Positions 2,963 through 27,400 of a stretch of DNA of 64,000 nt are shown piece after piece. How positions within the stretch are numbered: position 1 is the stretch's first letter; each line of letters opens with the position of its first letter. This DNA comes from Scyliorhinus canicula (lineage: Eukaryota), in contig NC_052172.1 in assembly GCF_902713615.1 (NCBI RefSeq), forward strand, positions 6,491,337 to 6,555,336, written 5' to 3'. The notes beneath the pieces were generated by a model. That model was not told the origin of the DNA and did not search any database. It saw only the letters and a program-made list of their open reading frames with translations. A program made the position numbers and the translations under genes.

Positions 2963-4729
2963 GATGACAGCCACAATCGATACTGCTTCGCTGTGTAAAC
3001 TAATGGAGCTCAGGACCACGTTCAGAGGCCGTCCCGCCCCTCTGGCTGACTAAATACGAAGCATCCGGTTGAGGTTAACAAGTGAGGTTGTTTGCCTGAA
3101 TAACCAACAGCCCAACCAGTCCTCGGGCGGGTCAGCAGCGCCACATACTGGAGGTATACCGAACGTAGACCGAATCGAGACTCATTGGATCATTCAAAAC
3201 AGGGCTAGTACAGACACGGAAGGCAGAATAACCTCCTTTTGTGCTAAGTCTATGATTGATCAATTTCGTCCTCCTGATAAAGATCTCGTTGACACATTAC
3301 AGCAAGGACATTATCTACATTGATAGATTGTTCGTCATTAATGAGTGGCAATTGCAATCACAAAGTTAGGCAGATGGATCAGTAAGGGATGGATGGAGGA
3401 TAAATACAGAGGCATCCATACAGATCGGTAGGGTAGGCAGCAGATAATACATTTGAGATAGATCATAGATAGAAGACAACTCGCTTTTTCCCTGCCATTG
3501 ATAGCTACATTTCTCCATGCTGACCCCTGACCTCCGATTTCCGTAAAAGACGGTGACGGATTGTGCTTGAGACGGGCAGGTTCATGTTCCGACTGTGTCT
3601 CTGTGCATAACTGGAAGCACATAAATACCGAGCTACTTCGCTCTGCTTCACTGTCCCTAACGTCAAGATCGAACTTGCTGTCTGCGGTTTTCTTGTGAAT
3701 TGTGTTTTGAAAGTGGCCTGAATCACCTTTTCTCCTATTTCAGGGAAATCTGTGGGTGGAGCCAGAGGACATTGGTAGGTGTTGAAGGAATACTTCAGAT
3801 CTGCCTTCGCCAACGAGAATGAGGAGGTAGATACAGAACACGGCGAGAGAGACTGTGAGGTTCCTCGGCAAATTGTCACAGGGAGTGACAAGCTATTGGA
3901 GGTGTTGGTAGCCTTACAAATGGTCAGATATCCAGGTCCGGAAGAATTCTGTCCCAGGATGCTGTGGACAGCGGGAGTGAGATTGCAGGGGCTGTGACCA
4001 AAATTGTTTACCCGTCTCCTGACTCGGGGGAGGTGCCAGAGGACTGGAGAACAAGTAATGTAGTCCCACTATTTAAGAAAGGTTGTGGAGATATGCCAGG
4101 GAACCACAGACCAGTGAGTCTCAGGTCAGTTATAGGGAAACTATTGGAGAATATTCTGAAGGAGAGGACATATCTCCACTTGGAGACGCAAGGTTTGATC
4201 AGGGATAGTCAGTATGACATTGTCAGTGGGAAGTCCTGCTAAACAGATTCAGGAATTGTTTTGAGCATGTAACCCGGTGTGTAGATGAAGGAGAGCATTT
4301 GATGTAGTTTTCGTGGATTTCATCAAAAGCTTTTTTCAAGGTCCCACATGGGAGACTTCTCAAGAAGGCAAATGCAGATGGGATACAGGGTATATTGATA
4401 AACTGGATTCATAATCGACTTAGCTGTAAGAGACAGAGTATGATGACAGACGCTTGCGTTAGTGACTGGAAGACAGTATCCAGTGGGGTACCACAGGGAT
4501 CTGTGATGGGTCCCCTACTGTTTGCCGTTTAGATAAATTACATAGATTACTATGTGGCAGTAGGATCAGTAATGATTGACCGGGTGGTAACAGTGAATTT
4601 GAGTGTTTTGGGCTACAGGACGATATAGACGTGATGGTGAAATGGGCAGAAAGGTGGATGATAGAATTTAAGCCTAAAAAGCGTGAGGTGATACCTTTTG
4701 GAATGTGACAATAATTCATAGAATTATCA

Positions 4730-5269: not shown

Positions 5270-5535
5270 CCCGGCTGGGTCACTGTCTGTGTGGAGTCTG
5301 CACATCCTCCCCGTGTGTGCGTGGGTTTCCTCCGGGTACTCCGGTTTCCTCCCACAGTCCAAAGATGTGCGGGTTAGGTGGATTGGCCATGCTAAATTGC
5401 CCGTAGTGTAAGGCTAATGGGGGGATTGTTGGGTTACGGGTATACGGGTTACGTGGGTTTAAGTAGGGTGATCATTGCTCGGCACAACATCGAGGGCCGA
5501 AGGGCCTGTTCTGTGCTGTACTGTTCTATGTTCTA
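5270..5535 (+). mobile_element. HE1-like V-SINE, 5' truncated
   Basis: Core and TTCTATG tail. Confidence 0.88.
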
Positions 5536-6119
5536 TGAGTACTGTGTGAAATTCTGGTCGCCACATTACAGGAAGGATGTTATTGCACTGGAGGGAGTGC
5601 AGAGGAGATTCACCAGGATATTGCCTGGGATCGAACATTTCAGTTATGAAGATAATTTGGATGGCATGGGTTGTTCTCTCTGGAGCAGAGAAGACTGAGG
5701 GGTGATCTGATTGAGGTGTACAAGACTATGGGGGCATCGGCAGGGTGGATAGGGAGCAGCTGTTCCCTTTAAATTGAAGGATCGGTTGCGAGGGGGCACA
5801 AGTTCAAGGTGAGGGGCGGGAGATTTATGTGGGATTTGAAGAAAAGCTTTTTTAACCAGAGGGTGGTGACTCTCTGGAACGCACTGCTTGGGAGGGTGGC
5901 TGACGCGGGTTGCCTCGCATCGTTTAGAAATGCTTTTGCATGAACTGTAGGCACGTCATAACATTCAAGGCTATGGGCCAAGTGCTGGCAAATGTGGCGA
6001 TGTAGAGAGGTCAGTGTTTTTTTTATGCGTCGGTGCAGACTCCATGGGCCGAAGGGCCTCTTCTGTGCCGTATTATTCTGTCATCATCTGATTCCCTGAC
6101 AACAGAGACATGTCCAATT

Positions 6120-6133
6120 CTGCCACCTGGTGG
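6120..6133 (-). promoter_or_regulatory. CTCF motif 21 bp 3' of V1 nonamer
   Basis: CCACCAGGTGGCAG. Confidence 0.75.
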
Positions 6134-6154
6134 CGGGAGTGAGCCCTGGGTGCA

Positions 6155-6193
6155 GGTTTTTGTCGCTGTGGGTCCGCTTTCTCAAACGCTGTG
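6155..6193 (-). other. 23-RSS of V1
   Basis: CACAGCG (6187-6193) + 23 bp + ACAAAAACC (6155-6163). Confidence 0.97.
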
Positions 6194-7082
6194 ATACTGC
6201 AAGCGCAGAAGTAGACAGCGGTGTGAGATACAGCGGCCTGTCTCAGTTTGATACTAAACAGCGTGTTACTAGTCCTGACTGCATCGAACGGCTCGGAGGT
6301 GTAGTTGTTGACGCTCCCTTCTCCAGCAGAATAGAAAAGAGCTTCTATCGCCCGATTTGGTTGTTGTCTGTACCAGAACATATATTGATAGTTAGCATTC
6401 TTCAGCGTGCAGCTGAGTGTGGCTGACATTCCTGCGGCGATCGATAGCACAGATGGCGACTGTTCCACGTAAGAAGCGAGTGTTCCTGCCGAATGAAACA
6501 TCGTGAGATTCTCAGGTTAGTCAATAATCGCTAAGGTGGAGATGAACATAGAAAATGCAACAACATCCATTTATAAAGCATCATTCCCGCCTCAGGAAGT
6601 CCCAAATCCTTTCAGCACCAAGACATTATTCGTTAAAATCTAGTTATTGTCGGGGCCAATGTAAACAGCAATCTCCTACGAACCGCAATGGATAACTGAG
6701 GAATGCATGTGTTTTTTTTTGGCTTTTATGCTGGGACAGATGGTCGGCTAATTACACGGCCAAGAAGTCCCCTGGTCTCCAATTTGCGCGCTGGGGTCGG
6801 AGGAATGGGTTGGGTGTCACTGATATCCGCCGAGACGGCACCTATAAAAATGCTGAACTCCCACTGCACTGACTTCAAGGCTATCACCGTAGATTGTGTC
6901 CTCGATCTCAGGGGTAAGAGTGGCCTCTGCACCTTCTGATTCCGACGACAAATTCCTCCCAGCGAGGCAGTATCTGGCATTTTAACGCCAAACTCCACAA
7001 AGACCTCTCAAAATGTTTGTAACTTTGACTTACGTGGAATTAGTGACACCATCAATATTAGATAGTGAACTTCACAAAACAT
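6194..7082 (-). CDS. TRBV: TCR beta-like V gene, family A (V1): leader exon 7034-7082, V exon 6194-6485
   Basis: Leader MFCEVHYLILMVSLIP with CCACCATG start and phase-1 GTAAGT donor; CAG acceptor at 6486; open V exon TLASYVEQSP..LSC..MFWYRQ..LFYS..FDAVR..YFCACS; 23-RSS follows. TRB assignment rests on the FR3 F-x-A-x-R motif and the CAxS end. Confidence 0.92.
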
Positions 7083-7202
7083 GGTGGTCGCTTCAATCGA
7101 TCCTGCTTTGCTGTGTAAACTAATGGAGCTCAGGACCACGTTCAGAGGCCACCCCTCTCCTCTGGCTGCTTAAGTTCGAAGTATTCGGTTAGGTTAACAC
7201 GC

Positions 7203-7218
7203 TGACGTCAGCTTCCTG
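7203..7218. promoter_or_regulatory. V1 promoter CRE plus ETS core
   Basis: TGACGTCA-G-CTTCCTG about 120 bp upstream of the ATG. Confidence 0.65.
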
Positions 7219-7574
7219 AATAACAAACACCCCACCCAGTCCTCGGACGCGTCTGCAGCGCCACATATTGGCAGAGCACAGAACGACAAGTAGGGATGTA
7301 TTAGAGGTGTTCACAATGATGACCAGATTTGATTGAGTTGATCAGGAAATAGTAATTCCATTGGAGGAGGCTCGTGGACCACAGGGTACAGACTTAAGAT
7401 GATTGACAGAAATATACAATGGGTGACGGGGAATTCTTGTGACCCGGAATAAACTGCCTGATAGAGTGTGAGCAGCAGATTCAATTGTATCTTTCAAAAG
7501 GGATAATTAGTTTACGGGAGACTTTTAGACACCGAGCGGCCCCTGTGCTCAAAGATAAAGGGAATGTGGGTCTT

Positions 7575-7580
7575 GTGTGT

Positions 7581-7611
<31 letters not shown>

Positions 7612-7613
7612 GT
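7575..7613. repeat. (TG)n plus poly-G
   Basis: Visible. Confidence 0.95.
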
Positions 7614-9069
7614 ATTAGCCAGGAGACACCAAACCGGGAGCCGGAAGTGCTTAGTAATAAACTCACTCAGTTACCTCAGATGGATGGTGAGAATGTGGAT
7701 CTCGCTCATATAAATCGTGTTTGAGAAAAACAATGCTGTGTATTTAATAGAATTTACGGAGTTGCTGAAGAATTGCATCGGATGAAATGAATAGAAACAT
7801 ATTCAGGATGGATAGGTCAGGAAGGTGAGGATTTCTAATAGGGAAGATTTTATATTAGAGCTGACATAGACTGGATGGGAGGAATGGCCTCCTTTTTTTT
7901 ACATCATGTGGTGCAGGCCAAAAGCGAATGAAGGGGTTAAATTATTTTCCGGGCACAGCCCACAGATTATTGCACAAACACGTCAAAAGCTGGTATTGAG
8001 TCTGAGAGAAGCGAGTTAACAGTTGTCAGCAGATTCTCAACCCGCCCTCAGGAGGCAGGTGTCCCTGTGATGAGCAGATGAACTGGGAGATTTTTAAAGA
8101 TACTGAAATGAAGTACTTTCTATGTGTGTGGGACATTCCTCTTGGAGCAGAGGAGGCGATGCCGAGGTTATCCTGAATAGTAAAAGGCTGATGGATTTCA
8201 GTTTGTGTGGTGTCTGCAAGAACCTGGATTTCACTTCATAGGATGAAGAAGATGAGGGGCAGATTTGGTTGAAACGTTGAGAAATAGGAGCATTTTTGAT
8301 TGTGTGAATAAAGAACAATTATTTCCAGTGGCAGATGTGTCGCTAGCTAAAGGACATATAACTGGAGGAGATACTTAGGATCGGTTTCTTCCATGAGTTT
8401 TTTATGTTCTGGAACATGTCACCTGGACGGATACAGAATGGAGAACAAATCGGGACTGCACCATTCTTTAACAGGGCTAGTAAAGACACGGAAGGCTGAA
8501 GAACCTCATCGCGCTGTGGTCTTATCCAAATCTCACTCTCCATTGTTACTACCGTGACTTGTTGATCCGTTAACAATGTCACCTGATTGGAAGTATGTCG
8601 ATGACACCTGAAAGGAAGAACATTATCTGCATTGATAAATTGGGCGTCATTAATTAGTACCAATTGCAATCACTTAAAGTTAGACAGATAGATTGTTAAT
8701 GGCTAGACAGTAGATAAATAGGGATCTATACCGATCGGCAGGCAGGCAGATAGATAATACCTTTGAGGTGGATGATAGATAGAAGACAGCTAGCTTTATC
8801 TCTGCCATTGAGAACTGGATTTCTCCATGCTGACACCTGCCCTCCATATCAGTAGAACATGGTAACTGGTCGTGTTTCAGGCAGGCGGGTTTATGTCCAA
8901 AATTTCAGCCCGACGTTACCTCTGTGCATCACAGTAAGTAATCATCTCTCTTCATCACTGACCCTATCTGCAGGTCGGACATGTATGCGGTATTCTTGTG
9001 AATTGTGTTTTGAAAGTGCCGGTACAGTCACATAGTCTGAATCGCCTTCTCTCCGACATCACGGAAATC

Positions 9070-11160
9070 TGTGGAAGGACCAGAGAACATTGGTAGTTGT
9101 TGAACGAATTCTTCTTATCTGTCTTCACCAAAGAGAATGAGGAGGTAGATTCAGATCTCGGGAGAGTGGCGGTGGGGTGGACTGTGACGTTCTTGAGCAA
9201 ATTGTCAAAGGGAGTGACAACTTATTGGAGTTGTTGGCAAGCTCAAAAGCGATCAAATCACCAGATCCGGATCAATTGCGTCCAGGCTGCTACGGGAGGC
9301 GAAGGAGGAGGTTCTGGGGCTCGGACCCAAATTGTTTATCCCTCTCCGGAACTGGGGGAGGTGCCAGAGAAATGGAGAAGATCTAATGTTGTCCCACTGT
9401 TTAAGAAAGATTGTGGAAGCGAATCGGGGAACTGCAGACCAGTGAGTTTCACGTCAGTGGAAGGTAAACTATTGGAGAATATTCTGAAGGAGAGAACCTA
9501 TCCGAACTTGGTGAGGCAGGGTCTGATCAGGAATAGTCAGCATGGGAGGATATGCCCAAACAAACCTCATTGATTTTTCTTAATATAAATTTAGATTAGC
9601 CAATTATTTTTTTTTCTAATTAAAGGGCAATTTAGCGTGGCCAATCCACCTACTCTGCACATTTTTGGGTTGTGGGGGCGAAACCCACGCAGACACGGGG
9701 AGAATGTGCAAACTCCACACGGACAGTGACCCGGGATCGAACCTGGGACCTCAGCGCCGGTTGTGCTAACCACTAGGCCACCGTGCTGCTTAGTTGACCA
9801 TATGGCCAAGTGTGTAGATGAGGGTAGTGAGTTGATATAGTTGTCTTGGATTTCAGCAAAACCTTTCATAAGGTCCTATGTGGGAGATTTATAAGGAAGG
9901 AAAATGCATATGGTATACACGATAGGTTGATACAAGCATTAAAAAATTACTGCGGATGCTGGAATCTGAAACCAAAATGAAAATGTTGGAAAATCTCAGC
10001 AGGTCTGGGAGCATCTGTAAGAAAAGAGCTACCGTTTCGAGTATTTGTCAAAGCTCAAAAGGGTCACCTGGACTCGAAACGTTATCTCTTCTCTCTCCTG
10101 CCAGACCTGTTTAGATTTTACAGCATTTTCTTTTTGGATAAGTTGATACAGTGGATTCATAATTGACTTAGCTGTAGGAGACAGAGGGCGATGACAGACG
10201 GCTGCTTTAGTAAGTAGAAGCCAGTGTTCAGTGGCATACCACAGAAATCTCTGATGGGTCCCCTGTTGTTTGTGATTTAAATACATTATATAGCTTACCA
10301 TGTGACAGTGGGATGGGTAAGTTTGCGAATGACACAAAATCGGGCGTGTAGTTCACAATGAGGTTGAGTGTCTTGGCGTAAAGGGAGATATAGACAGGAT
10401 GGTCAAATGGGCAGAAAAGTGGCTGATGGAATTGAACCCTGAAAATTGTGAGACGATACACTTTGGGAGGAGCAATTTGAAAAGAAAATATACCATGAAA
10501 GGCCTCACACTAATAGGTGGTGAAAAATGTTTATGGGTCACTTGTCTTTATGAATCGACGTATGCATAACAGAAGCATGGGCGTCATGTTGGAGTTGAAT
10601 GGAACGTTGGTGAAGCCACAGCTAGAGTACTGTGTGCAATTCTGGACGCCACATAATAGGGCGTATGTAATCGCACTGGAGTGGGTGCAGAGCAAATTCA
10701 CAAGGATGTTGCCTGGGATAGAATATTGAAGTTATGAAGAGAGGTTGGATAAGCTTGGGTTGTTTTCTTTGAAGAAAATATGGTTGAGGAGTGACCTAAT
10801 CGGGGTGTACAGGATTATGATGGATATAGACAGGGTGGAGCCGTCCCCTTTAGTTGAAGGGTCACTTCTGAGGTGACACAAGTTCAGGGTGAGGGGCAGA
10901 ATGTTTATGCTGGATTTATGGTAAACGTTTTTTCCCAAGAGCGTGGTGGCGGTCTGGAGTGCACTGCCTGGGAGGTTGGTAGGGGCCGGTTGCCTCACAT
11001 CCGTTAATAAGTACATGGATTAGTACTTGGCACGTCATAATATTCAAGGCTATGGGCCAATTGATGGCCAATGGGATTAGGTGAGCAGGACAGGTGATTT
11101 CATGCGTAGGTGCAGACTGGATGGGCCGAAGGACTTGTGAGCTGCATTAATCTGTGATTC
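9070..11160 (+). mobile_element. Fragmented CR1 (duplicated spacer copy)
   Basis: NEFFLSVFTKE, NVVPLFKK, PQLEYCVQFW remnants. Confidence 0.85.
9590..9790 (-). mobile_element. Short V-SINE
   Basis: Core and head. Confidence 0.82.
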
Positions 11161-11193
11161 TGTGATTCCCTGGAAAGAGACACTGATCCATTT

Positions 11194-11207
11194 CTGCCCC
11201 CTGGTGG
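11194..11207 (-). promoter_or_regulatory. CTCF motif 21 bp 3' of V2 nonamer
   Basis: CCACCAGGGGGCAG. Confidence 0.8.
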
Positions 11208-11228
11208 AGGGAATGAGCTCTCGGTGCA

Positions 11229-11267
11229 GGTTTTTGTCGCTGTGGGTCCGCTTTCTCAAACGCTGTG
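11229..11267 (-). other. 23-RSS of V2
   Basis: CACAGCG + 23 bp + ACAAAAACC. Confidence 0.97.
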
Positions 11268-11984
11268 ATACTACAAGCACAGAAGTAGACAGCGGTGTGA
11301 GATACAGCGGCGTGTCTCAGTTTGAGACTAAACAGCGTGTTGCTAGTCCTGACTGCATCGAACGGCTCGGAGGTGTAGTTGTTGATATTCCCTGCCCCAG
11401 CAGAATAGAAAAGAGCTTCCAATGCCCCATTTGGTTGTTGTCTGTACCAGAACATTTGGAGATTGTTAGTATTCTTCAGCGTGCAGCTGATAATGGCTGA
11501 TTTTCCTGCTGCGATCGAGAGCATAGATGGCGACTGTTCCACGTAAGAGGCGAGTATTCCTGCCGAATAAAACATCCGTTAGAATCTCAAGTTAATAGAT
11601 AATCGATTAGGCAGAGATAAACATATAAAACCGATTTATAAAGCATGTTTCGCGCTCCTGAAAGTCCCAAATCCTTTTATGAACAAGAAAGAATTCGTTA
11701 TAATCTGGTCATTGTTGTGATGGGGTCACTGACTTCCGCCCAGAGGGCACCTCTGAAAATACCGAACTCCCGCCGCACTGACCTCGAGAGAATCACCGTG
11801 TCCTCAATCTCAGGGGTAAGAGTGGCATCTGCACCTTCTGATTCCGAGGACAAATTCCTCCGAGTGAGTCGATAACTGACATTATACTGAAAAACTCCAC
11901 AAAGACCTCTCCAAAGGTTTGCAACTTTGACTTACGTGGAATTAGTAACACCATCAATGTTAGATAATGAACTTCACACAACAT
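11268..11984 (-). CDS. TRBV: TCR beta-like V gene, family A (V2): leader 11936-11984, V exon 11268-11559
   Basis: Leader MLCEVHYLTLMVLLIP/GTAAGT; open V exon ending YFCACS. Confidence 0.92.
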
Positions 11985-12105
11985 GTTGTCAGCTTGAATC
12001 GCTTCTGCTTCGCTGTGTAAACTAGTGGAGCTCAGGACCACGTTCAGAGGCCGCCCCTCTCCTCTGGCTGATTAAATATGAAGCATTCGGTTGAGGTTAA
12101 CACGC

Positions 12106-12121
12106 TGGCGTCAACTTCCTG
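12106..12121. promoter_or_regulatory. V2 promoter CRE variant plus ETS core
   Basis: TGGCGTCA-A-CTTCCTG at the equivalent position. Confidence 0.55.
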
Positions 12122-13999
12122 AATAACCAACATCCACCCAGTCCTCGGCGGGTAAGCAGCGCCACATATTGGCCGAGCACAGAATAACAAGTAGGGATGT
12201 AATAGAGGTGTTCACAATGATAACCGGGTTTCCTTGGTTGATCAGGAAACAGTAATTCCATTGGAGGAGGGTCGTGAACCACAGGCTAGGGACTTATGTT
12301 TGTTGGCACAAACAACATTGGGTGACAGTGAGTTCTTGTGACCCGGAATTGACTGCCTCCTGAAGTGTGAGCAGCAGATTCAATTGTAAATTTCCACAGG
12401 GATAATTAATTTAAGGGGAGACTGCTGGATATCAAGTGGCAGCTATGTTCAAACAGCAAATTGGGTGTGGTGGTTTAGATGGGGTGGGTGGGTAATTAGG
12501 TAGCAGATACAAATCCGGGAACCATAAGTGGTTAGTGATTATCTCACTCGGTTACTTCAGATGGGTGGGGAGAATGTAGACCACGCTCATACAAAACGTA
12601 TGTTTGAGAAAAACAGCGCTGGATATTTAATAGAATTTACGGAAATGCTGAAGAAGTACATCGGAAGAAATGAATAGGAAGATATTCAATAGAGATAGTT
12701 GAGGAGGGCTAGAATTTCTAATTGGGAAGATTTTACAAAGAGAGCTGGCACAGAGTCAATGGGAGGAATGGCCTGTGTTTATATCAAGAGGTGCCGGTTT
12801 CTGCTCCGATAAGCTAAAAGCGAATCAATGGGTTAAATTATTTTCCGAGCACAAACCAAAGATTATTACACAACAGGTCAAACTAGGCTTGAGTCTGAGA
12901 GAAGCGAGTTAACGGTTGTCAGCAGTCTCAAACCGCCCTCAGGAGGCAGGTGACCCTTCGATTAACAGAGGACCTCGGAGATGTTTAAAGATTCTGAGCT
13001 GAATTATTTTCTATGTGTGTGGGACATTCCTCTTGGAGCTGAGGATGCTATGCAGAGGATATCCTCAATAGTAAAACGATGATGGATTTCAGTTTGTGTG
13101 GGAACCGCAAGAACCGGGATTTCACTCCATACAGCGAGGAAGATGAGGGGCATATTTGATCGAGGCGTTGAGAATCAGGAACGTCTTTGATGGTGCGAAT
13201 AGGGAGCAATTATACCAGTGGCAGGTGGTTCGTCAGCTAAAGGGGAATGTGCTGAGATAACTGGAGGAGATAATTAGAATCGGTTTCTTCTGTGTGTTTT
13301 TATATCTGGAATATGTCACCAGGACGGATACTGAACGGAGACCGAATCCGGACTGACGGGAACATTCTTCAACAGGGCTAGTACAGACAAGGAAGGCTGA
13401 ATAATTCCCTTTCGTGCTAAATCAGTTCATGGCCATATCAAAATCGGCCTCTCCGTCGTTAGTACTGTGACGTTTTGATCCGTTGGCAACGTCATCTGGT
13501 TGTAAACATGTCGACAACATCTTACATTATCTACATTGATAGAATTTTCGTCATTAATTAGTGCCAATTGCAACCACTTAAAGTTTGACAGATGGATAAT
13601 TAATGGATAGAAAGGAGATAAATACACCGGGATCTATGCAGATAGGTAGGTAGGCAGATAATACATTTGAGGTTGATGATAGATAGAAGACAGCTGGCTT
13701 TCCCTCTGCCATTGAGAACTAGATTTCTCCTTGCAGACCCCTCCCCTCCATATCAGCAGAACACGGTGACTGGTGTGTTTGAGACCGGTGGGTTTATGTC
13801 CCAAATTTCAGCCCGACTGTGCCTCTGTGCATCACTGCAATCACAGAAATACCGACCTACATCTCTCTGCTCCACTGTCCCTATCTTCAGGTCGAACTTG
13901 TTGCCCGCAGGCCTTCTTGTGAATTGTGTTTTGAAAGTGCCGGTACAGTCACATGGTCTGGATCACCTTCTCCCCTACGTCAGGGAAATCTGTGGATGG

Positions 14000-14900
14000 A
14001 CCAGAGAACATTGGTCGACGCTGAGAGAATTCATCATATCTGTCTTCACAAAAGTGAATGAGGAGGTAGATACAGATATCGGGAGGGGACTGTGAAGTTC
14101 TTGAGCAAATTGTCAAAGGAAGTGACACGTTAGTGGAGTTGCTGGCAAGTTTAAAAGTGGTCAAATCTCCAGATCCAGATGAATTGTATACCAGGATGCT
14201 GTGGGAGGCGCAGGGGGTGGATGTGGGGCTCGGAGCCAAATTGTTAATCCCTCTCCGGTCTCGGGGGAGGTGCCAGGGGACAGTAGAATGTGTGGATACC
14301 AGAAGCATGGAGGTCATGTCGGAGTTGAATGGAACTTTGGTGAGGCCACAGCTGGAGCACTGTGAGCAATTATTGTCGCCACATTATAGGAACGATGTGA
14401 GGGGGAGCTGCAACGATTCACCAAGATATTGCCTGGGTGGAACATTTAAGTTATGAAGAGAGGTTGGGTATGCTTGCGTTGTTTTCTCTGGTGAAGCGAT
14501 TGTTGAGGGGGTCCTGATCGAGGTGTACAGGATTAAGAAGGATACAGTCAGGGCGGTTAGGGAACAACTGTTACCCTTATTTAAAGGGGCAGTTAAGAGG
14601 CGTCACAAGTTCAAGGTGACGGGCAGGAGTTTTAGGGGGGGTTTATGGGAATCCTTTTTTACCCAGAGGTTGGTGACGGTCTGGAACGCACTGCCTGGGA
14701 AGGTGGGTGGGGAGCGTTGCCTCGCATCCTTTAAAAAGTAACTGGATGAGCACTTGGGCCATTTTAACATTCAAGTCTCTGGGCCAGGTGCTGGCAAATG
14801 GGATTAAGTGGGCAGGTCAACTGTTTTTCATGCGTCAGTACAGGCTTGATGGGCCGAAGGTCCTCCTCTCTGCTGTGTTATTCTGTGATGCTATGATTCC
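14000..14900 (+). mobile_element. Fragmented CR1 (duplicated spacer copy, internally deleted)
   Basis: SPDPDELYTRMLWE, RPQLEHC remnants and 3' UTR. Confidence 0.8.
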
Positions 14901-14924
14901 ATGGCAACAGTAATTTATCCAATT

Positions 14925-14938
14925 CTGCCACCTGGTGG
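14925..14938 (-). promoter_or_regulatory. CTCF motif 21 bp 3' of V3 nonamer
   Basis: CCACCAGGTGGCAG. Confidence 0.75.
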
Positions 14939-14959
14939 CGGGAATGAGCTCTGGGTGCA

Positions 14960-14998
14960 GGTTTTTGTCGCTGTGGATCCGCTTTCTCAAACGCTGTG
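14960..14998 (-). other. 23-RSS of V3
   Basis: CACAGCG + 23 bp + ACAAAAACC. Confidence 0.97.
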
Positions 14999-15732
14999 AT
15001 ACTACAAGCACAGAAGTAGACAGCGTTGTGAGATACAGCGGCGTGTCTCAGTTTGATACTAAACAGCGTGTTGCTAGTCCTGACTGCATCGAACGGCTCG
15101 GATGTGTAGTTGTTGAGGTTCCCTTCTCCAGCAGAATCGAAAAGAGTGTCCAATGCCCGATTTGGTTGTTGTCTGTACCAGAACATTTGGGGATAGTTAG
15201 TATTCTTCAGCGTGCAGCTGATAATGGCTGATTTTCCTGCTGCGATCGAGAGCACAGATGGCGACTGTTCCACGTAAGAGGCGAGTATTCCTGCCGAATA
15301 AAACATGCGTTAGATTATCAGGTTAATTATTAATCGATTAGGTGGAGATAAACATATAACACGCAATAACATCCATTTATAAAGCATCATTCCCGCCTCA
15401 GAAAGTCCCAACTCCTTTTATCAACAAGAAATAATTCGTTACAATCTGGTCAGTGTTGTGATGGCGTCACTGACTTCCGCCCAGACGGCACCTCTGAAAA
15501 TGCCGACCTCTCACCACACTGACCTCGAGAGGATCCCCGTAGATTGTGTCCTCAATCTCAAGGGAAAGAGTGGCGTCTGCACCTTCTGATTCCGAGGATA
15601 CAGTCCTCCTAGAGGGGCGACACACGGCATTATGTTGCAAAACATCACAAAGACCTCTCCAAATGTTTGCCACTTTGACTTACGTGGAATTAGTGACACC
15701 ATCAATGTTAGATAATGAACTTCACACACCAT
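14999..15732 (-). CDS. TRBV: TCR beta-like V gene, family A (V3): leader 15684-15732, V exon 14999-15290
   Basis: Leader MVCEVHYLTLMVSLIP/GTAAGT; open V exon ending YFCACS; LFDS instead of LFYS and HNAVY instead of HTAVY may affect function. Confidence 0.9.
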
Positions 15733-15850
15733 GGTGGCAGCGTCAATCGATACAACTTTGCTGTGTAAACTAATGGAGCTCAGGACCACGTTCAGATGCC
15801 GCCCCGCTCCTATGACTGATTAAATACGATACATTCGGTTGAGGTTAACA

Positions 15851-15868
15851 AGTGACGTCGATTTCCTG
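15851..15868. promoter_or_regulatory. V3 promoter CRE/T-beta-decamer-like site plus ETS core
   Basis: AGTGACGTCG-A-TTTCCTG. Confidence 0.55.
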
Positions 15869-16652
15869 AATAGCCAACACCCCACCCAGTCCTCGGGCCA
15901 GTCAGCAGCGCCACATATTGGCAGAGCACAGAACGACAAGTAGGGATGTAATAGAGGTGTTCACAATGATAACCGGATTTGATTGTGTTGATGAAGAAAC
16001 ATTAATTCCATTGAAGGAGGTCGTGAACCACAGGATACAAACTTAAGGTTGTTGGCAGAAACAAAATCAATGAGTGACATTGAGTTTTTGTGACCCGGAA
16101 TTGCTGAAGTGTCTGCCTGATAGAGTGTGAGCAGCAGATTCAATTATAACTTTCCAAAGGGATAATTAGGTGAAGAGGAGACATTTAGATATCAAGTGGC
16201 CGCTATGTTCAATGAGCAAGGGGGTTTTGGGGTGTGGTAAGGGGGGTGTAATTGTGTAGCAGATACCAAACCGGGAACCATAAGTGGTCAGTAATAAACT
16301 CACTCTGTTTTCTCAGATGCGTGGTGAGAATGTGGATCTCGCTCATACAGAACGTGTTTGAGGAAAACGGCGTTGGGTATTTGATAGAATTGGCGGAGAT
16401 GCTGAAGATATACATCGGAAGAAATGAATAGAAAGATATTCAATAGGGATAGACGAGGAGGGTTGGGATTTCTAATTGGGAAGATTTTACAAAGAGAGTC
16501 GATAGGAAGAATGGCCTCGTTTTTTCAGTTCAGTCGGTGAAGCTCCAATAGGCTAAAAGCGAAGCAAGGGTTTAAATTATTTTCCGGGCACCAACCACAT
16601 ATTATTACATAAACACCTGAAAAGTGGGCCTGAATCCGAGAGAAGCGAGTTA

Positions 16653-16985
16653 TAGAACATAGAACATAGAACAGTACAGCACAGAACAGGCCCTTCGGCC
16701 CTCGATGTTGTGCCGAACAATGATCACCCTACTTAAACCCACGTAACCCGTATACCCATAACCCAACAATCCCCCCATTAACCTTACACTACGGGCAATT
16801 TAGCATGGCCAATCCACCTAACCCGCACATCTTTGGACTGTGGGAGGAAACCGGAGCACCCGGAGGAAACCCACGCACACACGGGGAGGACGTGCAGACT
16901 CCACACAGACAGTGACCCAGCCAGGACTCAAACCCACGTATCCACCCTATACCCGTAACCCAACAACCCCCCCCCCTTAACCATA
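16653..16985 (-). mobile_element. HE1-like V-SINE
   Basis: (TAGAACA)n tail and core. Confidence 0.88.
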
Positions 16986-17007
16986 TCCTTATCCTAAATA
17001 GTAAAAC

Positions 17008-18050
17008 GATGATAGAATATAGAACAGAATATAGAAAAGTACAGCACAGGAACAGGAGCTTTGGCCCTCGAAGCCTGTGCCGACAATGCTGTCCGGGGTC
17101 TAACGTAAACTTTTCTACACTTCCGGGGTGCATATCCCTCTATTCCCATGCTATTCATGTATTTGTCAAGGTGCCCTGTAAACGTCACTATCGTACCTGC
17201 TTCCACCACCTCCTCTGACAGCCAGTTACAGACACCCACTACCCTCTGCGTAAAAAATTTCCCTCACCCATCTCACCTTAAACTTATGACCCCCAGTAAT
17301 TGACTCTTCCACCCTTGGAAAAAGCTTTTCACTATCCACTTTGTCCACCCCCTCATAATTTTGTAGACATCGATCAGGCCGCCCCACATCCTCCATCGTT
17401 CCAATGAGAACAAATCAATTTTAATCAACCTCTCCTCATAGCTAATTCCCTCCATACCAGGCAAATCCTTGTAAATCTCTTCTGTACCCTCTCTAAAGCC
17501 TCCACATCTTTCTGGTAGTGTGGCAACCAGAATTGAACACTATATTCCAAGTGTAGCCTAACTAAGGTTCTATACAGCTGCAACATGACTTGCCAATTTT
17601 ATACTCAATATCCCGACCCATAAAGACAGGCATGCCGTATGGCTTCGTGGCTACTTGCGTTGCCACTTGCAGTACACCCAGACCCCTCTGCCTATCAATA
17701 CCCTTAAGGATTCTGCCATTTACTGTATATTTCCCACCCATATTAGACCTTCCAAAATGCACAGCCTCACATTTGTGTGGATTAACCTCCACCTACCATC
17801 TCTCCACCCAAGTCTCCAAACGATCCAAATCCTGCTATATCCTCTGACAGTCCTCATCGCTATCCGCAATCCCACCAACCTTTGTATTGTTCGCAAACTT
17901 ACTCATCAGACCAATTACATTTTCCTCCAAATGATTTATATATACTGCAAACAGCAACGGTCCCAGTCCAGATCCCTGCAGAACACCACTAGTCACAGCC
18001 CTCCATTCAGAAAAGCACCTTTCCACTGCTACCCTCTGTCTTCTATGACC
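17008..18050 (-). mobile_element. CR1 3' fragment
   Basis: WRAVTSGVLQGSGLGPLLF, PGMEGISYEERL; (TTCTA)n-like tail. Confidence 0.88.
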
Positions 18051-18409
18051 TCATTTGGAAGTACTCTCAACTTCATTCCCTCTCTCATTCACCCCATATT
18101 CACATTCACCCCCACACCCTCATTCATCCCTCACCCATATCCTCATTCAGACCCTTACTCTCCTTTCAGGGTCTTTGCTCCCTGCTCTCCCCATCAATGC
18201 TGGACAGGGGTTTCGCAGAACCCAAATCAAAGCAAGATTTTCCATTTAAATGATTGGAAAATCAGGAGATCCATTTCCAAACCCAAGATTTTCAGCCTCA
18301 AAATGTAACCAAAACATGAAATACACAATATTTATTTGTCAAAAATGGGCACAACATAATCTATAGAATACACAATTCACAAATACTGTTAACATTCATG
18401 ATCAATAAG

Positions 18410-20110
18410 GTGGTTTGTAGATTTGAAGAACGCTCGAATGAATTGTTGCACCTTCTGCTTTCCTTGGTACAGCCTCCTGTCGCAGCTGAGGCCACTTTTA
18501 ATCTCTGCTGATCTTTAATGATCTTCTTCGGAAGGGAGTTCATCTTTGAAATTTTTCAATGCTCCATCAATGAGCTTGAAAGCCTCCGACATGTTTTTAA
18601 AAATAAATTTAGAGTACCCAATTCATTTTTTTCCAATTAAGGGGCAATTTAGCGTGGCCAACCCACCGACCATGCACATCTTTAGATTGTGGGCGTGAAA
18701 CCCATGCAAACACGGGGAGAACCTGCACATTCCACACGGAAAGTGACCCAGAGCCAGGATTGAACCTTGGACCTCGGTGCCCTGAGGCAACAATGCTAAC
18801 TACTGCGCCACCGTGCTGCTCCGTGCATTGCAATGTTAACTGCTTGCTTGGAGAAACCACCTCCTTTTCTTGACCTTTACTCGATAGAGCTTGTTCTAGC
18901 TCAAATTTCATCAGCTCCTCTGTTATAGCCCTCTGGGACTCCTCCAGCTGGGCATGATAGATCGCTAGTGATGATTGGGTTGTGAGTTAACCAGCACTCG
19001 TACAACAGTTCAACTGCTATAGCAACTGACACGTAAGGAGACGGGACCCTGAGATGAGTAACCAGGTTCTGTGTAAATATTGCTGTTGTGCTGAATAAAC
19101 GCCTTTCTTATGAACTCTTTGGACTCCCCCTTTGCTGTTTACTTAACCCTCATTGGCAGAGATTCGCTATGATATTCTTGCACCTTTTCAACATTATCTT
19201 GTCCCTACTTCAGAAAATTCTGGTTTGATGGTCATAATCCCTTTCTTGCTGAACAAATTCAATTGGCTCACTAAAGCTGCAGATCGTGAATATCTTCAGG
19301 CAAGATCTTGTGCCGTTCACAGTCGCCTGTTTTACCTCTTAAGCATTTCAAATATTATTAATTGCCTGAACCACGTTGTAGTCAATCCAGAACATGCAGG
19401 CTGTTGGCTTTCTTTCATTGGTCTCCTTGTTGAGTTTAGCGAAGGTCCTGCAGAATTGTAAGCATTGATAAGAACTTGAGCAATACTTTGGATCAAGTAG
19501 TGTTTTTAGGCTGGTATTCTACACAGAATCTTTCAGAGGTCGTTGATGTTCGACGGATGTCCTGGGACATTGTCCAAAAAGTAATAAAGGTTAATGAGTA
19601 ATGCTTTTCTGAATACAATATTTATTGGCAGTTGGGCATAAATGCATTGAAAACCACTCATTAAATATGCCCATTGTCACCAACGCTTTCTTATGTGACA
19701 TGCAAATTACAGGAAATTGCCCTCTAGGTACCCTTCACTGCTTGTGGGCTTTCTGCATGGTACAGGAACAGAAGCCCAATCCTGAGTCACTTTCTGCAGG
19801 GCCACCCTAAAACACAGTCAAGCAATCCTTAGCTAGCTTGAATCCTGGTACAGTTTTCCCTCTGATTAAAAGGTCTTGCCGGGAATTCTCCTCCAAAAAA
19901 AAACACATTGAAAATTTGCTGCAGTCTGAATAGCCTTCCTCGTCAACGGTGACCTTTTATTCTGCCGGGTGATTATTGATTGGTTCAATATCCACGCTTG
20001 TAGCTTCATTACTCATCTTGGTGTTACGGAGGCCGCGGTGTCTTTGGAAACTGTCAAACCATCACGACCCATTTTTACCATCCAACCAAACTTTGGGACC
20101 CATGCTGGCC
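18410..20110 (-). mobile_element. Tigger/pogo (Tc1-mariner, DDE_1) transposase fossil, interrupted by a SINE
   Basis: Manual minus-strand translation across frames: WFDSFQRHRGLRNTKMSNEATSVD; QQIFNV..FFWRRIPGKTF..PGFKLAKDCLT; KKALVT..FNEWF; LLDNVPGHP; QPKNTT; FWIDYNVVQAINNI; SEAFKLIDGAL. Confidence 0.8.
18595..18820 (-). mobile_element. Short V-SINE nested in the Tigger fossil
   Basis: Core and head. Confidence 0.82.
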
Positions 20111-20362
20111 GACCATAACTACCCACCATTTTCGCTTACCTGTGATGCAACCGGCGATGGATTTCAGTTTGTGTGGGGTCTGCAACAACCAGGATTTCAC
20201 TCCATAGAACGAAGAAGATGTGGGACAGATTTAATTGAGGCGTTGAGAATTAGGAGCATTTCTCATCGTGTGAAGAAAGATAAATTTTTAAAGTGGCAGA
20301 TGGTTCGCTAGCTAATGGAGAATGTGTTAAGATACTGGAGAATGTGGAGATACTTAGAATCT

Positions 20363-20700
20363 CGCAGCACGGTACCATAGTGGTTTGCTCAGTTGCTTCA
20401 CAGCTCGAGGGTCCAGGTTCGATTCTCGGCTTGGGTCACTGTCTGTGCGGAGTTTAAACGTTGCCTGCGTGGGTTTCCTCCGGGTGCTCCGGTATCGTCC
20501 CACAGTCCAAAGATGTGTAGGTTAGGTGGATTGGCCATTCTAAATTGCCCCTAGTGTCCAAAAAGGTTAGGTGGCTGGGTTAGAATAAAGGGGTGAGGGT
20601 GAAGGTATGGGGCTTAAGTGGGGTGTTCTTTCAAAGGGCCAGAACATACTAGATGGGCGAAATGGCCTCTTCCTGCATTGTACATTCTATGATACTCTAT
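20363..20700 (+). mobile_element. HE1-like V-SINE
   Basis: Head, core and tail. Confidence 0.85.
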
Positions 20701-21399
20701 GAATCGGTTTGTTCCATGTGTTTTATGTTCTGAAACATGTCACCTGTACGGATACTGAATGGACCGAATCGGGACTGACTGGATCATTCTTCAACAGAGC
20801 TAGTACAGACAAGGAAGGCAGAATAACCTCCTTTCGCGCTAAATCAGTCTATGGTCTTATCAAAATACGCCTCTCTAACATTACTACTGTGAAGTGTTGA
20901 TCCGTTAACAACGTCATCTGATTATAAACATATCGATGGCACCTTAAAGGAAGGACATTATCTACATTGAAAGATTGTTCGTCATTACTTAGTGCCAATT
21001 GCAATCACTTAAAGTTAGACAAATGAATGAATAATGGATAGACAGGAGATAAATACAGACATCTATTCAGATAGGTAGGTAGGCAGATAGATAATACATT
21101 TGAGGTAGATGATAGACAGAAGACAGCTAGCTTTCTCTCTACCATTGAGAACTAAATTTCACCATGCTGACCTCTGCCCTCCAGATCAGCAGAACACGGT
21201 AACTGGCCGTGTTTGAGACGGGCGTGTTTATTTCCCAAGTTGCAGAAATACCGAGCTACTTCGCTCTGCTTCACTGTCCCTACCTTCATATCGAATTTGT
21301 TGTCTGCAGTCTTCTTGTGAATTGTGTTTTGAATGTGCTGGTACAGTCACATGGGCTGAATCACCTTCTCTTCTACATCATCGAAATCTGTGGATGCAC

Positions 21400-23295
21400 C
21401 AGAGCACATTGGTAGCTGTTGAACGAATTCTTCATATCTGTCTTCACCAAAGAGAATGAGGAGGTAGATTCAGATCTCGGGAGGGTGCGGGTGGGGGGGA
21501 CTGTGAATTTATTGAGCAAATTGTCACAGGGAGTGACAAGTTATTGGAGTTGCTGGCAAGATAAAAAGTGCTCATATCTCCAGATCCGGATGAATTGTGC
21601 CCAGGCTGCTGTGGGAGGCGAAGGAGGAGGTTGTGGGGCTCGGACCCAAATTGTTAATCTCCTCCGGCCTCTGGGGAGGTGCCAGAGAACTGGGGAGCAG
21701 TTAATTTTGTCCCACTGTTTAAGAAAGGTTGTAGAGATAAGCCAGGGAATTATAGACCAGTGAGTCTCACGTCAGTGGCAGGGAAACTATTGGAGAATAT
21801 TCTGAAGAAGAGAACCTATCCGAACTCGGAAAGGCAAGGTTTGATCAGGAATAGTCCGCATGACTTTGTCAGAGGGACGTCATGCCCAACAAACTTCATG
21901 GAATTTTCTGAGCATCTGGCCAAGGTTTGTGTTGCTGTCGTTTTCATGGATTTCAACAAAACCTTTGGTAAGGTCCTACATAGCAGATGTATAAAGAAGG
22001 AAAATGCACATGGGATACATGATAGGTTGATGCAAGCATAAAAGCAAATTAAAGCGGATGATGGAGTCTGAAAAAAAAAGAAAATGCTTGCAAATCTCAG
22101 CAAGTCTGGCAGCATCTGTAGGGAGAGAAAACAGCTAACGTTTCGAGTCCAGATGACCCTTTGTCTAAGCTCAAAGAGCCATCTGGAATGGAAGAGTTAG
22201 CTCTTCTCTCTCTCTACAGATGCTGCCAGATCTGCTGAGATGTTCCAGCATTTTCTTTCTGCATCAGTTGATACGGTGGAGTCATAATTGACTTAGTAGT
22301 AGGAGACTGAGGGCGATGACAGGCGGCACCATTAGTAAGTAGAAACCAGTGTCCAGCGGTATACCACAGGAAACTCTGATGGGTCCCCTATTGTTTGTCA
22401 TTTATGTAAATTGCATAAATTACATAGGTTACCATGTGACAGTAGGATCAGTAATTTTGCGAATGACACAAAGATTGGGAGGGTGGTTATCAGTGAGGTT
22501 GAGTGTCTTGAGGTACAGGAAGATATAGACAAGATGGCCAAATGGCCAGAAAAGTTGTTGATGGTATTTAACCCTGAAAGGTGCGAGGTGATACACTTTG
22601 GAAGGAGCAATTTGACGAGGAAATATTCAATGAATGGCCAGACGTTGATAGATTGGTGAAAATGGCATCTGGGCCACTTATCTTTATCAATCGAGGTACG
22701 GATAACAGAAACATAGAGGTCATGTTGGAGTTGTATAGGCATTTGCTGTGGCCACCGCTGGAGTAGTGTGTAATTCCGGGCGCCACATTACAGGAAGGAA
22801 GAAATTGCACTGGAAGGGGTGCAGAGGCGATTCACCAGGATGTTGACTGCGATGGAACATTTAAGTTATGAAGATAATTTGGCTAGGCTTGGGTTGTTTT
22901 CGATGGAGCAGAGAAGACAGATGGGTGACTTGTTGAGATGTACAAGATTATGAGGGGCATGGACGGAGTGGATAAGGAACAGCTGTTCCCGTAAGTTAAA
23001 TGGTCAGTCACTGGATCACAAGATCAAGGTGACGGTCAGGAGGTTTCGGCAGGATTTGTGAAAAAAGGTTTAAACCCAGAGTGTGATTACCATTTGAAAT
23101 GCACTTCCTGGGAGGGTGCTGGAGGTGAGATGCCTCACATCCTTTAAAAAGCACCTGAATGCGCAGTTGGCACGTCATCACATGCAAGGCTATGGGCCAA
23201 GTGCTGGAAGATGGGATTGGGTGGGCAGGTCAGGTGTTTTTCATGTGTCGGTGCAGACTCCATGCTGCGAAAGGCCTCTTCTGTGCTGCATTATT
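21400..23295 (+). mobile_element. Fragmented CR1 (duplicated spacer copy)
   Basis: NFVPLFKKGCRDKPGNYRPVSLTS remnant and 3' end next to the V4 CTCF site. Confidence 0.85.
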
Positions 23296-23309
23296 CTGCC
23301 ACCTGGTGG
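23296..23309 (-). promoter_or_regulatory. CTCF motif 21 bp 3' of V4 nonamer
   Basis: CCACCAGGTGGCAG. Confidence 0.75.
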
Positions 23310-23330
23310 CGGGAATGAGCTCTTGGTGCA

Positions 23331-23369
23331 GGTTTTTGTCGCCATGGGTCCGCTTTCTCAAACGCTGTG
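23331..23369 (-). other. 23-RSS of V4
   Basis: CACAGCG + 23 bp + ACAAAAACC. Confidence 0.97.
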
Positions 23370-24437: not shown

Positions 24438-27400
24438 AATAACAAACACCCCCCCCCCCCAGTCTTCGGGCGCGTCAGCAGCGCCACATATTGGCAGAGC
24501 ACAGCATGACAAGTAGGGATGTAATAGAAGTGTTCACAATGATGACCGCATTTGATTTAATTGATCAGGAAACAGTAATTCCATTGGAGGAGGCTCGTGG
24601 ACCACAGGGTACATACATAAGATGATTGGCAGAAATATACCTTGGGTGACAGGGAATTCCTGTGCCCCGGAATAGACTGCCTGATCGAATGTGAGCAGCA
24701 GAATCAATTATATCTTTCTAAAGGGATAATTAGTTGAAAGGGAGACTTTTAGACACCGAGTGGCAGCCACGTTCCGAGATAAAGGGGGTGTGGGTTTTGG
24801 GAGCTGGGTGGTGATAATTAGGCAGCAGGCACCAAACGGGAACCGTAAGTGGTTGTAATAAACTCACTCGGTTAACTGGGATGGGTAGTGAGAATGTGGA
24901 CCTCGCTCATGCAAAACGTGTTTCAGGAAAACAGTGCTGGATATTTAATAGACTTTCCGGAAATGCTGAGGAATTACATCGGAAGAAATTAATAGAAAGA
25001 TATTCAATAGGGATAGGTGAGGAAGGTTAGGATTTCTAATAGGGAAGATTTTATAAAGAGAGCTGGCAGAGACTCGATGGGAGAAATAGCCTCTGCTTTT
25101 CTTTTAGATCAGGCGGTGCAAGTTTCTGCTCCAATTGGCTAAAAGTGAATCAACGGGTTAAATTATTTTCCGAATACAAACTACAGATTATTACACAAAC
25201 ACCTGAAAAGCGGCCTTGAGTCTGAGAGAAGCGAGTTAACGGTTGTCAACAGATTCTCAACCCGCCCTCAAGAGACAGGTGTCCCTGTGATGAACAGATG
25301 AACAAAGGCCTTTGTACAGGGTGAAACTAAGAGATGTTTATAGATTCTGAACTGAATTATTTTCTGTGTGTGTGGGGCATTCCTCTTGGAACTGAGGAGG
25401 CTATGCCGAGGTTATCCAGAATGGAGGATTTTGGTTACTGTGCCGACTGTAGAATCTACTCCATCCAGCGAAGAGATGAGGGGCAGAATTGATTGAGCCG
25501 TTGAGAATCAGGAGCGTTTTTCATCGTGCGAATAAAGAACAATTGTTTCCAGTGGCAGATGGTTCGCTTGCTGAAGGAAAATGCTGTAATATAACTGGAG
25601 GAGCTATTTAGAATCGGTTTCTTCTGTGTTTTTTTATGTTCTGGAAGAGGTCACCTGGAGGGATACTATACGTAGACCGAATCGGGACTGACTGGATCAT
25701 TCTTTATCAGGGCTAGTACAGACAGGGAAGGTAGAATAACCTCCTTTCGCGCTAAATCAGTCTATGGTCTTATCAGAATCTACCTCTCCATCGTTACTAC
25801 TGTGACGTGTTGATCCGTTAACAACGTCATCTGATTGTAAACATGTTGATGACACCTGAAAGGAAGGACATTAACTGCATTGAAAAATTGTTCGTCATTA
25901 ATTAGTGCCAATTGCAATCAATTAAATTTAGACTAAAGAATCTGAGAGTGAAGTAACAAAGGCCAGCGGCCGGAGACTTTGTCATCGAAGACCCAAACTG
26001 GGGACTGTAAACTGAACCAACTGAATTAGCAGAAAACGCTGAGGCCACAATACCCCGTCCTCCAACCTTAATTTACAGCTCCGCCTTCACCTGATTGGCT
26101 GCAAGTAGCGCACATGGGAGCCGGCGTTGCTCAGGGTTCATCATAGATAAACGGGGTGGGCCAAAAGGTGTCAGATGAAATCTACTGTGACCCAATTCAG
26201 CACCAAGAATGATCCTCTCCAGTATCCAACTTCTAATGACAGTGCTGTCTCTAAATGGTGAGAAAGTAGAACACGAGGTGGAAGAAAGGAATATGTGTCA
26301 CACAAACAAGTAATTACAAACTGGGACACAGGCAATTGGAGGAGTAGCAATCTTGCGGGTTTTTGGTCCTTCCCTCTCGGAATACAAAAGGAAAATGTGT
26401 CGCTTCCGTTGTATACAACATTGGTCAGTCCAGAATACAGAGCTGAATTTTGGGGAATATCTTACAATACCTTCGGGGTGAGGGACCGCGGGGTGGGGTG
26501 GGGGGTATCTTCGACGCACCCGTCACATTTGGGATTTCTGAGCTACATTCAAAAGCAAGAACATGCGTGGAACTTTCGACCCATCGAATTGCCCCGCCAG
26601 TGAAGCAGTTGAGGGTCCTTCATTAAATGCTTCCAAAATAAAGATAGATAGTTTTTTGAAGAATAAAGGAAGAAAGGGTTCTGGTATTCGGACGGGAAAG
26701 TGGAGCTGAGTCCACAAAAGATCGGCCATGATCTCATTGAATGGCGGAGCAGGCTCGATAGGCCAGATGGCCGACTCCTGCTCCTAGTTCTTATAACTCC
26801 ATTTTTCAGCCTGTTCGTATAATCCTCGAGCATTTTGCCAGTCAGAATTCTCTCTAATTCATTCTTGAATATATTCAATAAACGCAGCCTCCACTATTCG
26901 CTCGGAAGACAAATTCCGACAGAATCGACCGAAAAATTCCTCTTCAATCGTCTTCTTCTTCTTTGGACTTCACTAGTTTTACTCAGGGTCCCACAATGCC
27001 AGTTGATTGCGCAACCCCCATCTCCTCTGCTAAGTCACTCATTCCATCTGCTCTAAGGTATTTCTCTCTTTCGTTGTTCCAGGCAGTCTCATCGCCCACT
27101 CGCCGTCACCCAACTCACCACATTTCCGCTCTCTCTTTACCTCTGAAAGAGATGACTGGAGCATTTCAGCTTCTGCTGGTCTCCCCTCTCCGATGTTTCC
27201 AGAATATTCCCTGAATACCCCTCACACTCCCCGGCGGGTTGGTTCCTGAATTGATTCCTTTCAGTCCGCTTCCCTCATTCAGATGGCATTACTGCCCAGT
27301 TCTTCTTCCTCTCTGCTTGATGTTGTTGAAGTTTCTGCACGGAATACCAAGCCCCATCTCATTACTGTCTTGTAGATTAAAGAAGAGCATAATGTCCCGG

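Follow-up and report, generated by a model that had tools for sequence, protein, structure and literature searches.

In several mouse VH families, CTCF is bound no more than 100 bp from the recombination signal sequence (RSS), and two Tcrb V genes also have CTCF close to the RSS (PMC5859386 Table 2). By contacting the DJH recombination centre while RAG scans, such RSS-proximal elements promote the use of the VH genes beside them (10.1101/2020.01.01.891473). The V-region CTCF elements of mouse Tcrb serve as anchors for loop extrusion toward the recombination centre (PMC10772921), and nearly all mammalian V-region CTCF elements face that centre (PMC10772921; PMC5859386). Almost everything known about how distant V genes gain access to the recombination centre comes from mouse Igh, Igk and Tcrb. 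CTCF-dependent loop-extrusion signatures have been reported for the little skate (10.64898/2026.10.19.759930), and our literature searches turned up no description of CTCF elements in the antigen-receptor loci of cartilaginous fish. In this study, we analysed a 64-kb window of shark DNA (Scyliorhinus canicula, C27:6491337-6555336, C27 being the contig that carries the locus; positions given without a contig name are those of the whole window), in which the V genes of one family of a T-cell receptor (TCR)-beta locus, here termed family A, each carry a putative CTCF element 21 bp past the RSS nonamer.

The mouse D-proximal VH genes (VH81X/7183, Q52 and others) resemble the shark arrangement in that the motif lies within 100 bp 3' of a 23-RSS and in that the element is family-specific, oriented like its V gene and, in the shark apparently, facing the recombination centre (PMC5859386 Table 2; 10.1101/2020.01.01.891473). 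The two differ in locus, TCR-beta in the shark versus Igh in mammals. Moreover, VH81X is D-proximal, whereas shark family A lies in the middle of its locus, separated from the J cluster by 250-570 kb and by other V genes, and the shark locus, unlike the mouse paradigm, includes an inverted V block without CTCF motifs. Mouse Tcrb, with 18 V-region CTCF elements such as the Trbv1 element, is the same type of locus; all of its V-region sites are in convergent orientation to the elements on either side of the recombination centre, and two of them are close to an RSS (PMC10772921; PMC5859386), but most are located at or near V promoters, whereas the shark family-A site is RSS-adjacent. In mouse Tcra/Tcrd, 129 of 144 V-region CTCF sites face J-C (PMC5859386), as in the shark, although these sites lie mostly upstream of V promoters and the corresponding site of a shark TRAV-type family, described below, lies 25 bp past the RSS.

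The family-A V unit within a TCR-beta locus

Four family-A V genes were found in the window, all of them on the minus strand and ending in ...AVYFCACS, with the RSS directly after ...YFCACS. All four RSSs consist of the heptamer CACAGCG, a 23-bp spacer and the nonamer ACAAAAACC, and in each copy the gap between the nonamer and a 14-bp CTCF-type core is exactly 21 bp. The motifs were scored on a CTCF matrix (an approximate version of JASPAR MA0139.1; maximum 27 bits), and the features of the four units are as follows.

6118..6136, minus strand: V-A1 CTCF-type motif, 19-mer CCGCCACCAGGTGGCAGAA, with the 14-bp core at 6120-6133; 21.2 bits forward, 16.1 reverse
6134..6154, minus strand: V-A1 21-bp linker between nonamer and CTCF core, TGCACCCAGGGCTCACTCCCG
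6155..6193, minus strand: V-A1 23-RSS, with heptamer CACAGCG at 6187-6193 and nonamer ACAAAAACC at 6155-6163
6194..6485, minus strand: V-A1 V exon encoding a TCR-beta-type V domain (…SYVEQSPS…WYRQQ…AVYFCACS), from translation, PDB matches and transcripts
7031..7082 (approximate), minus strand: V-A1 leader exon MFCEVHYLILMVSLIP with donor GTAAGT, read from the sequence
11192..11210, minus strand: V-A2 CTCF-type motif CCTCCACCAGGGGGCAGAA, core 11194-11207; 20.1 bits forward, 7.5 reverse
11229..11267, minus strand: V-A2 23-RSS, nonamer 11229-11237
14923..14941, minus strand: V-A3 CTCF-type motif, core 14925-14938; 21.2 bits
14960..14998, minus strand: V-A3 23-RSS, nonamer 14960-14968
23294..23312, minus strand: V-A4 CTCF-type motif, core 23296-23309; 21.2 bits
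23331..23369, minus strand: V-A4 23-RSS, nonamer 23331-23339

The core, CCACCAG(G/T)GGCAG, takes the form CCACCAGGTGGCAG in three copies and CCACCAGGGGGCAG in one, and all 14 of its positions fit the vertebrate CTCF core CCASYAGRKGGCRS. The 19-mers score 21.2, 20.1, 21.2 and 21.2 bits, and in the surrounding 264 kb a score of at least 20 bits is reached at ~1e-5 of the positions on each strand. The window has eight exact copies of the nonamer ACAAAAACC, every one on the minus strand, where shuffled sequence would give 0.82, and CCACCAGKGGGCAG at up to two mismatches has five window matches against 0.93 expected, four of which, on the minus strand, are the family-A sites. The sequence-only reading had placed four motifs in this region, 21 bp beyond the nonamer and oriented like the V genes; a pattern search and the scan with the approximate matrix (20.1-21.2 bits) confirmed the positions and the gap and supported the orientation. 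Three of the four sites contain the near-palindrome GCCACC-A-GGTGGC, of which the opposite strand scores 16.1 bits, and their orientation is determined mainly by the near-invariant A at matrix position 9, together with the flanks. In V-A2, which carries a GGGGG variant, the difference between 20.1 bits forward and 7.5 bits reverse leaves the orientation unambiguous.

The locus is a TCR-beta translocon, in agreement with what had been supposed from the sequence. The V domains of family A, and of a second family termed B, have TCR-beta chains as their best single-domain PDB matches, and the family-A translations show the V-set residues Cys23, Trp41 and Cys104; the only sequence homologue found by way of proteins was a Scyliorhinus torazame protein with 58% identity. 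In run X3, which comes from the same organism, transcript contigs stop matching at the V coding end (6194/6195) and continue into a D-J junction, which for V-A1 reads CACS-IAGTDV-AYFGQ. These transcripts splice at 6485 to a leader exon ~550 bp upstream; the sequence behind 6485 matches the V-A1 leader exon with one difference, and a leader candidate is retained in most family-A copies. The ends, splicing and J joining of the X3 transcripts indicate that family A is transcribed, spliced and rearranged.

A search of the 4.22-Gb genome with the junction 17-mer gave a single exact match, to the minus strand at C27:6233393. This position falls within a TRBJ cluster of six segments of the type ...YFGxGTKLTVLG, which occupies C27:6.2311-6.2338 Mb, also on the minus strand, and the germline J joined to V-A1 (…DVAYFGQGTKLTVLG) is located at C27:6233400. 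Since the family-A V genes lie at least ~264 kb upstream of this cluster on the same strand, they join by deletion, and their CTCF motifs point at D-J-C, toward the TRBJ cluster (C27:6.231-6.234 Mb), with the qualification that three of the four window sites are near-palindromic. No J segments were found within the 264 kb of C27:6291337-6555336, and a C1-set family search for the constant region returned 150 immunoglobulin-type matches, none of them on C27.

The family-A site is a likely RSS-proximal V-gene CTCF element. In the explanation that we favour, to which as a whole we assign a probability of roughly 0.55, a family-A TRBV unit would comprise a leader, a V exon, a 23-RSS, a short linker and a putative CTCF-binding element, the last facing the D-J-C recombination centre ~264 kb downstream in the same direction as the V gene. 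CTCF at the motif would stall cohesin, or anchor it, as a loop is extruded between the V cluster and the recombination centre, and the paused extrusion would keep the adjacent RSS longer at the RAG-bound D-J-C region, thereby raising the use of the V gene. We infer CTCF occupancy, cohesin stalling and the effect on V usage by analogy with the mouse RSS-proximal VH elements.

CTCF-type motifs in family A, its relatives and an unrelated V family

A DNA search of the genome identified nine family-A copies on C27 (6.48-6.80 Mb), all of which keep the 21-bp linker length, and seven of the nine have motifs of 18.2-22.0 bits. The proposal that every family-A gene carries the motif therefore held for the window (4/4) but not genome-wide, where one copy scores 14.2 bits and another 8.6 bits. 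The former, at C27:6488k, combines an intact V gene and a perfect RSS with a motif weakened to CCGACAGGTGGCAG, whereas the latter is a frameshifted pseudogene with a damaged nonamer, a 22-bp spacer and the most decayed motif. The variants in family A include intact, GGGGG, CCGACAGG and pseudogene forms; weak motifs are found in the copies at C27:6488k and C27:6650k (GGTGGAAG), and intact motifs beside identical RSSs at C27:6497k, 6506k, 6514k and 6799k. Because the sole clear pseudogene has the most decayed motif, we counted motif decay in favour of the proposed V-gene element.

Several points weigh against the proposed element, and some of them speak for an alternative that we consider unlikely, namely that a CTCF-like sequence arose by chance 3' of an ancestral V gene and, as a neutral passenger without a role in recombination, was copied with every duplication. 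Mean pairwise identity within family A is 0.91 for the V exon, 0.94-1.0 for the RSS, 0.90 for the linker and 0.89 for the motif, so the motif is kept no better than the linker or the V exon, and it barely exceeds the ~0.8 identity of alignable upstream non-coding DNA. The sharp drop in conservation 3' of the motif coincides with the simple-repeat tail of a co-duplicated transposon, and the linker and downstream transposon shared by the C27 copies indicate a single duplication lineage. Since an intact copy with a perfect RSS tolerates a weakened motif, the site is not indispensable, and most V genes of the C27 locus, family B included, are without an RSS-adjacent site. In addition, the near-palindromy of three window sites and of one site on contig C6 weakens the orientation calls, and the CTCF scores depend on an approximate matrix.

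The diverged relatives of family A argue against a passenger. Four family-A-like V genes are located on C6, with V exons 68-72% identical to those of family A, and all four have a CTCF-like motif 31-38 bp past the nonamer (CCGTCACAAGATGGCAG, CCGCCATCGGGTGGCAG, CTGCCATTAGGTGGCAG and CCACCATCCGGTGGCAG), scoring 10.4-16.8 bits, with the lowest score in the copy that has a defective RSS. A TRBJ-like cluster of at least six segments (…YFGxGTKLTVLG) lies on the minus strand at C6:220.631-220.635 Mb (220630966-220636226), and the V genes (C6:220.51-220.76 Mb) flank it facing inward: the minus strand carries two at 220.75 Mb and the plus strand two at 220.51-220.55 Mb, so that two of the four would have to join by inversion. 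Judged from this arrangement of segments, the C6 genes form a second TRB-type locus. Between the C27 and C6 copies, mean identity is 0.93 for the heptamer and 0.92 for the nonamer, 0.75 for the motif and 0.69 for the V exon, whereas the linker (0.43) and the 40 bp past the motif (0.50) are close to the 0.45 +/- 0.07 that the same aligner gives for unrelated sequence.

The motif is thus retained between the two loci at an identity of 0.75 while both flanks are at the random level and have changed in length, indicating that it is a conservation island, which would not be expected of a passenger. The C6 motifs had been chosen as the best match near the RSS, a choice that could inflate their similarity; in a control that took the best match in 5,000 random 63-bp stretches, with 45 start positions each, the mean identity to the family-A motif was 0.40, and the observed 0.74-0.84 was reached in at most 0.2% of trials.

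A TRAV-type V family unrelated to family A likewise carries a CTCF motif of its own, similarly placed and oriented, which again argues against a passenger. In a genome pattern search, ACAA(A/T)AACC followed after 25 bp by CCACCAGAGGGCG was found in at least 16 places on many contigs. One of these places is given here.

C69:4113907-4116952: TRAV-type module

In three copies that were read, the V exon (...WYIQYP...DCAVYFCAM) is followed by an RSS with a 22-23-bp spacer and by a motif of 18.1-21.3 bits that is co-oriented with the V gene. Among single-domain structures, TCR-alpha chains match this V domain best, and the linker and motif variant of the family are both unlike those of family A. A genome-wide search for canonical 23-RSSs that have the forward half-motif AGRKGGC 10-40 bp past them gave 17 matches, 15 of them at V-gene RSSs, versus none for the reverse-complement half-motif and one for a backwards-pattern control; the ratio of 17 forward to 0 reverse matches likewise counts against a passenger. 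The strict pattern, ACAAAAACC plus the full core, was at chance level genome-wide outside family A (7 matches versus 6 for the backwards control). A signal emerged only with the RSS heptamer required or with the variant nonamers of whole V families permitted; the coupling is a property of particular V families rather than of all V genes.

DNA contigs of a second species (runs X17 and X13) align to V-A1 at 85-95% identity and span the RSS, linker and motif, indicating that the module predates the split of the two species. Of the three X17 contigs that cover the family-A motif, one differs at matrix positions 11 and 12, giving CCACCAGTGGGCAG, and another lacks 5 bp of the linker and 1 bp of the nonamer, so the spacing is not invariant. 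Among the differences listed, none falls in the core of two of the three contigs, which is not proof of identity. In the one further species covered, the module was therefore present, with a linker 5 bp shorter in one contig.

In these sequence comparisons, the element has real evolutionary support from the diverged paralogous loci and the unrelated V family. The caveat of the sequence-only reading that its four copies are recent paralogs applies among the C27 copies, where the motif is no better kept than the linker, but is largely offset by the C6 relatives that retain the motif and by the separate TRAV-type family. Its fixed 21 bp, if understood as a requirement, had to be given up, the distance being 31-38 bp on C6 and 25 bp in the TRAV-type family and the linker being 5 bp shorter in the second-species contig; by these comparisons the 21-bp spacing is a shared inheritance, not a requirement.

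The surrounding V cluster and other possible roles for the motif

The 264 kb of C27:6291337-6555336 contain 27 V segments in both orientations. CTCF matches of at least 13 bits in this region number 18 on the minus strand and 5 on the plus strand, and four of the five plus-strand matches overlap minus-strand family-A sites, three as palindromic echoes and one as the decayed site of the pseudogene. Outside family A, 12 motifs of at least 13 bits lie on the minus strand versus 1 on the plus strand (C27:6295470-6550701), with 2.5 per strand in shuffles; the strongest of those in the window (29836-59383) are at 45557-45575 (22.0 bits) and 52758-52776 (18.2 bits). This 12:1 bias toward the J cluster matches what is seen in mammalian antigen-receptor loci (PMC10772921; PMC5859386).

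The other motifs of the V cluster are intergenic as well as co-oriented, and the V-region elements of mouse Tcrb are loop anchors, with synapsis possible by diffusion (PMC10772921). Both points would suit a real CTCF site with a job other than recombination, which would separate neighbouring V transcription units as an insulator or boundary, or anchor the locus architecture in general, and would not act directly on the adjacent RSS, an explanation that we hold to be quite unlikely. Were the RSS irrelevant, it would be difficult to account for a site 21-38 bp from the nonamer in three V lineages, and this explanation overlaps with the favoured explanation, in which CTCF anchors extrusion beside the RSS, more than it excludes it. 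It is very improbable that the site serves another factor, either an E-box protein (E2A/HEB, ZEB/Snail) at CAGGTG or a zinc-finger protein on GCCACC-N-GGTGGC: CAGGTG and a near-perfect palindrome are found in most C27 copies, but the E-box is gone from two CAGGGG copies (the GGGGG variants) that are still full CTCF matches and is absent from all four C6 relatives (TAGGTG, CGGGTG, CCGGTG and AAGATG) and from the TRAV-type motif (CAGAGG), the constant part being the CTCF 3' half, G(G/A)(T/G)GGC, and the E-box was rejected as the main explanation.

No RSS-adjacent CTCF site was found at the four family-B V genes of the window (...YYCAWSL). In family B, a degenerate half-motif (…GCCAG(G/A)GGGC…) scoring below 4 bits lies ~32 bp past the nonamer, and some genes have a better CTCF motif 211-288 bp downstream, which reaches 16.8 bits at 50580-50598; this could represent a counterpart of the family-A site that has decayed or moved. 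The half-motifs and downstream motifs are found at C27:6408447-6427112 and, in the window, at 31780-31800, 50580-50598 and 35040-35060. A block of V genes on the opposite strand (family B and CAA(R/S)DG types) is located at C27:6329633-6401853 and 6452200, between family A and the J cluster, and its segments would need inversional joining. No CTCF motif of at least 13 bits was found on either strand of this inverted block.

Reach of the module and further features of the V units

The shark module appears to predate the split of the two TRB-type loci and to be present in a TCR-alpha/delta-type V family as well. On the basis of one genome and one related species, we suggest only tentatively that RSS-adjacent CTCF elements facing the recombination centre may be an old and recurrent design of gnathostome antigen-receptor loci rather than a speciality of mammalian Igh. 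If this were true, cohesin/CTCF-guided presentation of V RSSs would already have operated in T-cell-receptor translocons early in jawed vertebrates, and if the shark TCR-beta locus, its duplicate and the TCR-alpha-type family all attach a CTCF site to the V RSS, the coupling of extrusion to V(D)J recombination would either be ancient or evolve anew with ease. Family-A copies that share identical RSSs yet differ in whether the motif is intact, weakened or decayed provide a natural experiment, and repertoire sequencing by itself would therefore suffice to test the idea.

A retroelement tail (…GGGCCGAAGGGCCT…TTCTATG repeats) in reverse orientation lies ~25-40 bp past the motif in all C27 copies (in the window, 5500-6100), and a diverged tail also follows the copy at C6:220750k; the tail appears to be an old part of the V unit. 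A transposon origin of the motif was considered and rejected, as 20 other tails (GGCCGAAGGGCC…TTCTATG repeats) in the 264 kb run into unrelated DNA; a CTCF match near an element tail was found in this region only at a family-A copy and at one other tail. In V-A4, 42 bp have been lost between the CTCF motif and the downstream transposon (23252-23296 versus 6078-6120), beginning immediately past the motif, with the deletion breakpoint at a CAGAAT repeat and the motif preserved up to GGCAGAAT.

On the promoter side, every family-A gene has a conserved CTGCCAATATGTGGCGCTG ~180 bp upstream of its leader ATG, at the following positions.

7256-7274, 12157-12175, 15906-15924, 24479-24497 and 3136-3154: CTGCCAATATGTGGCGCTG element

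The element contains a CCAAT box and is probably a promoter element. It is unlikely to be a promoter-side CTCF site, since it scores 11.5-12.9 bits with a near-invariant G missing.

Four near-identical 23-RSSs (CACAGTGACAACAACT…ACAAAAAC) were also observed elsewhere in the genome (C69:7799, C508:187302, C517:146935 and C621:658719), on contigs that also hold immunoglobulin-type constant domains, and each is followed after 25 bp by GAACAGAGGGC, a partial CTCF core.

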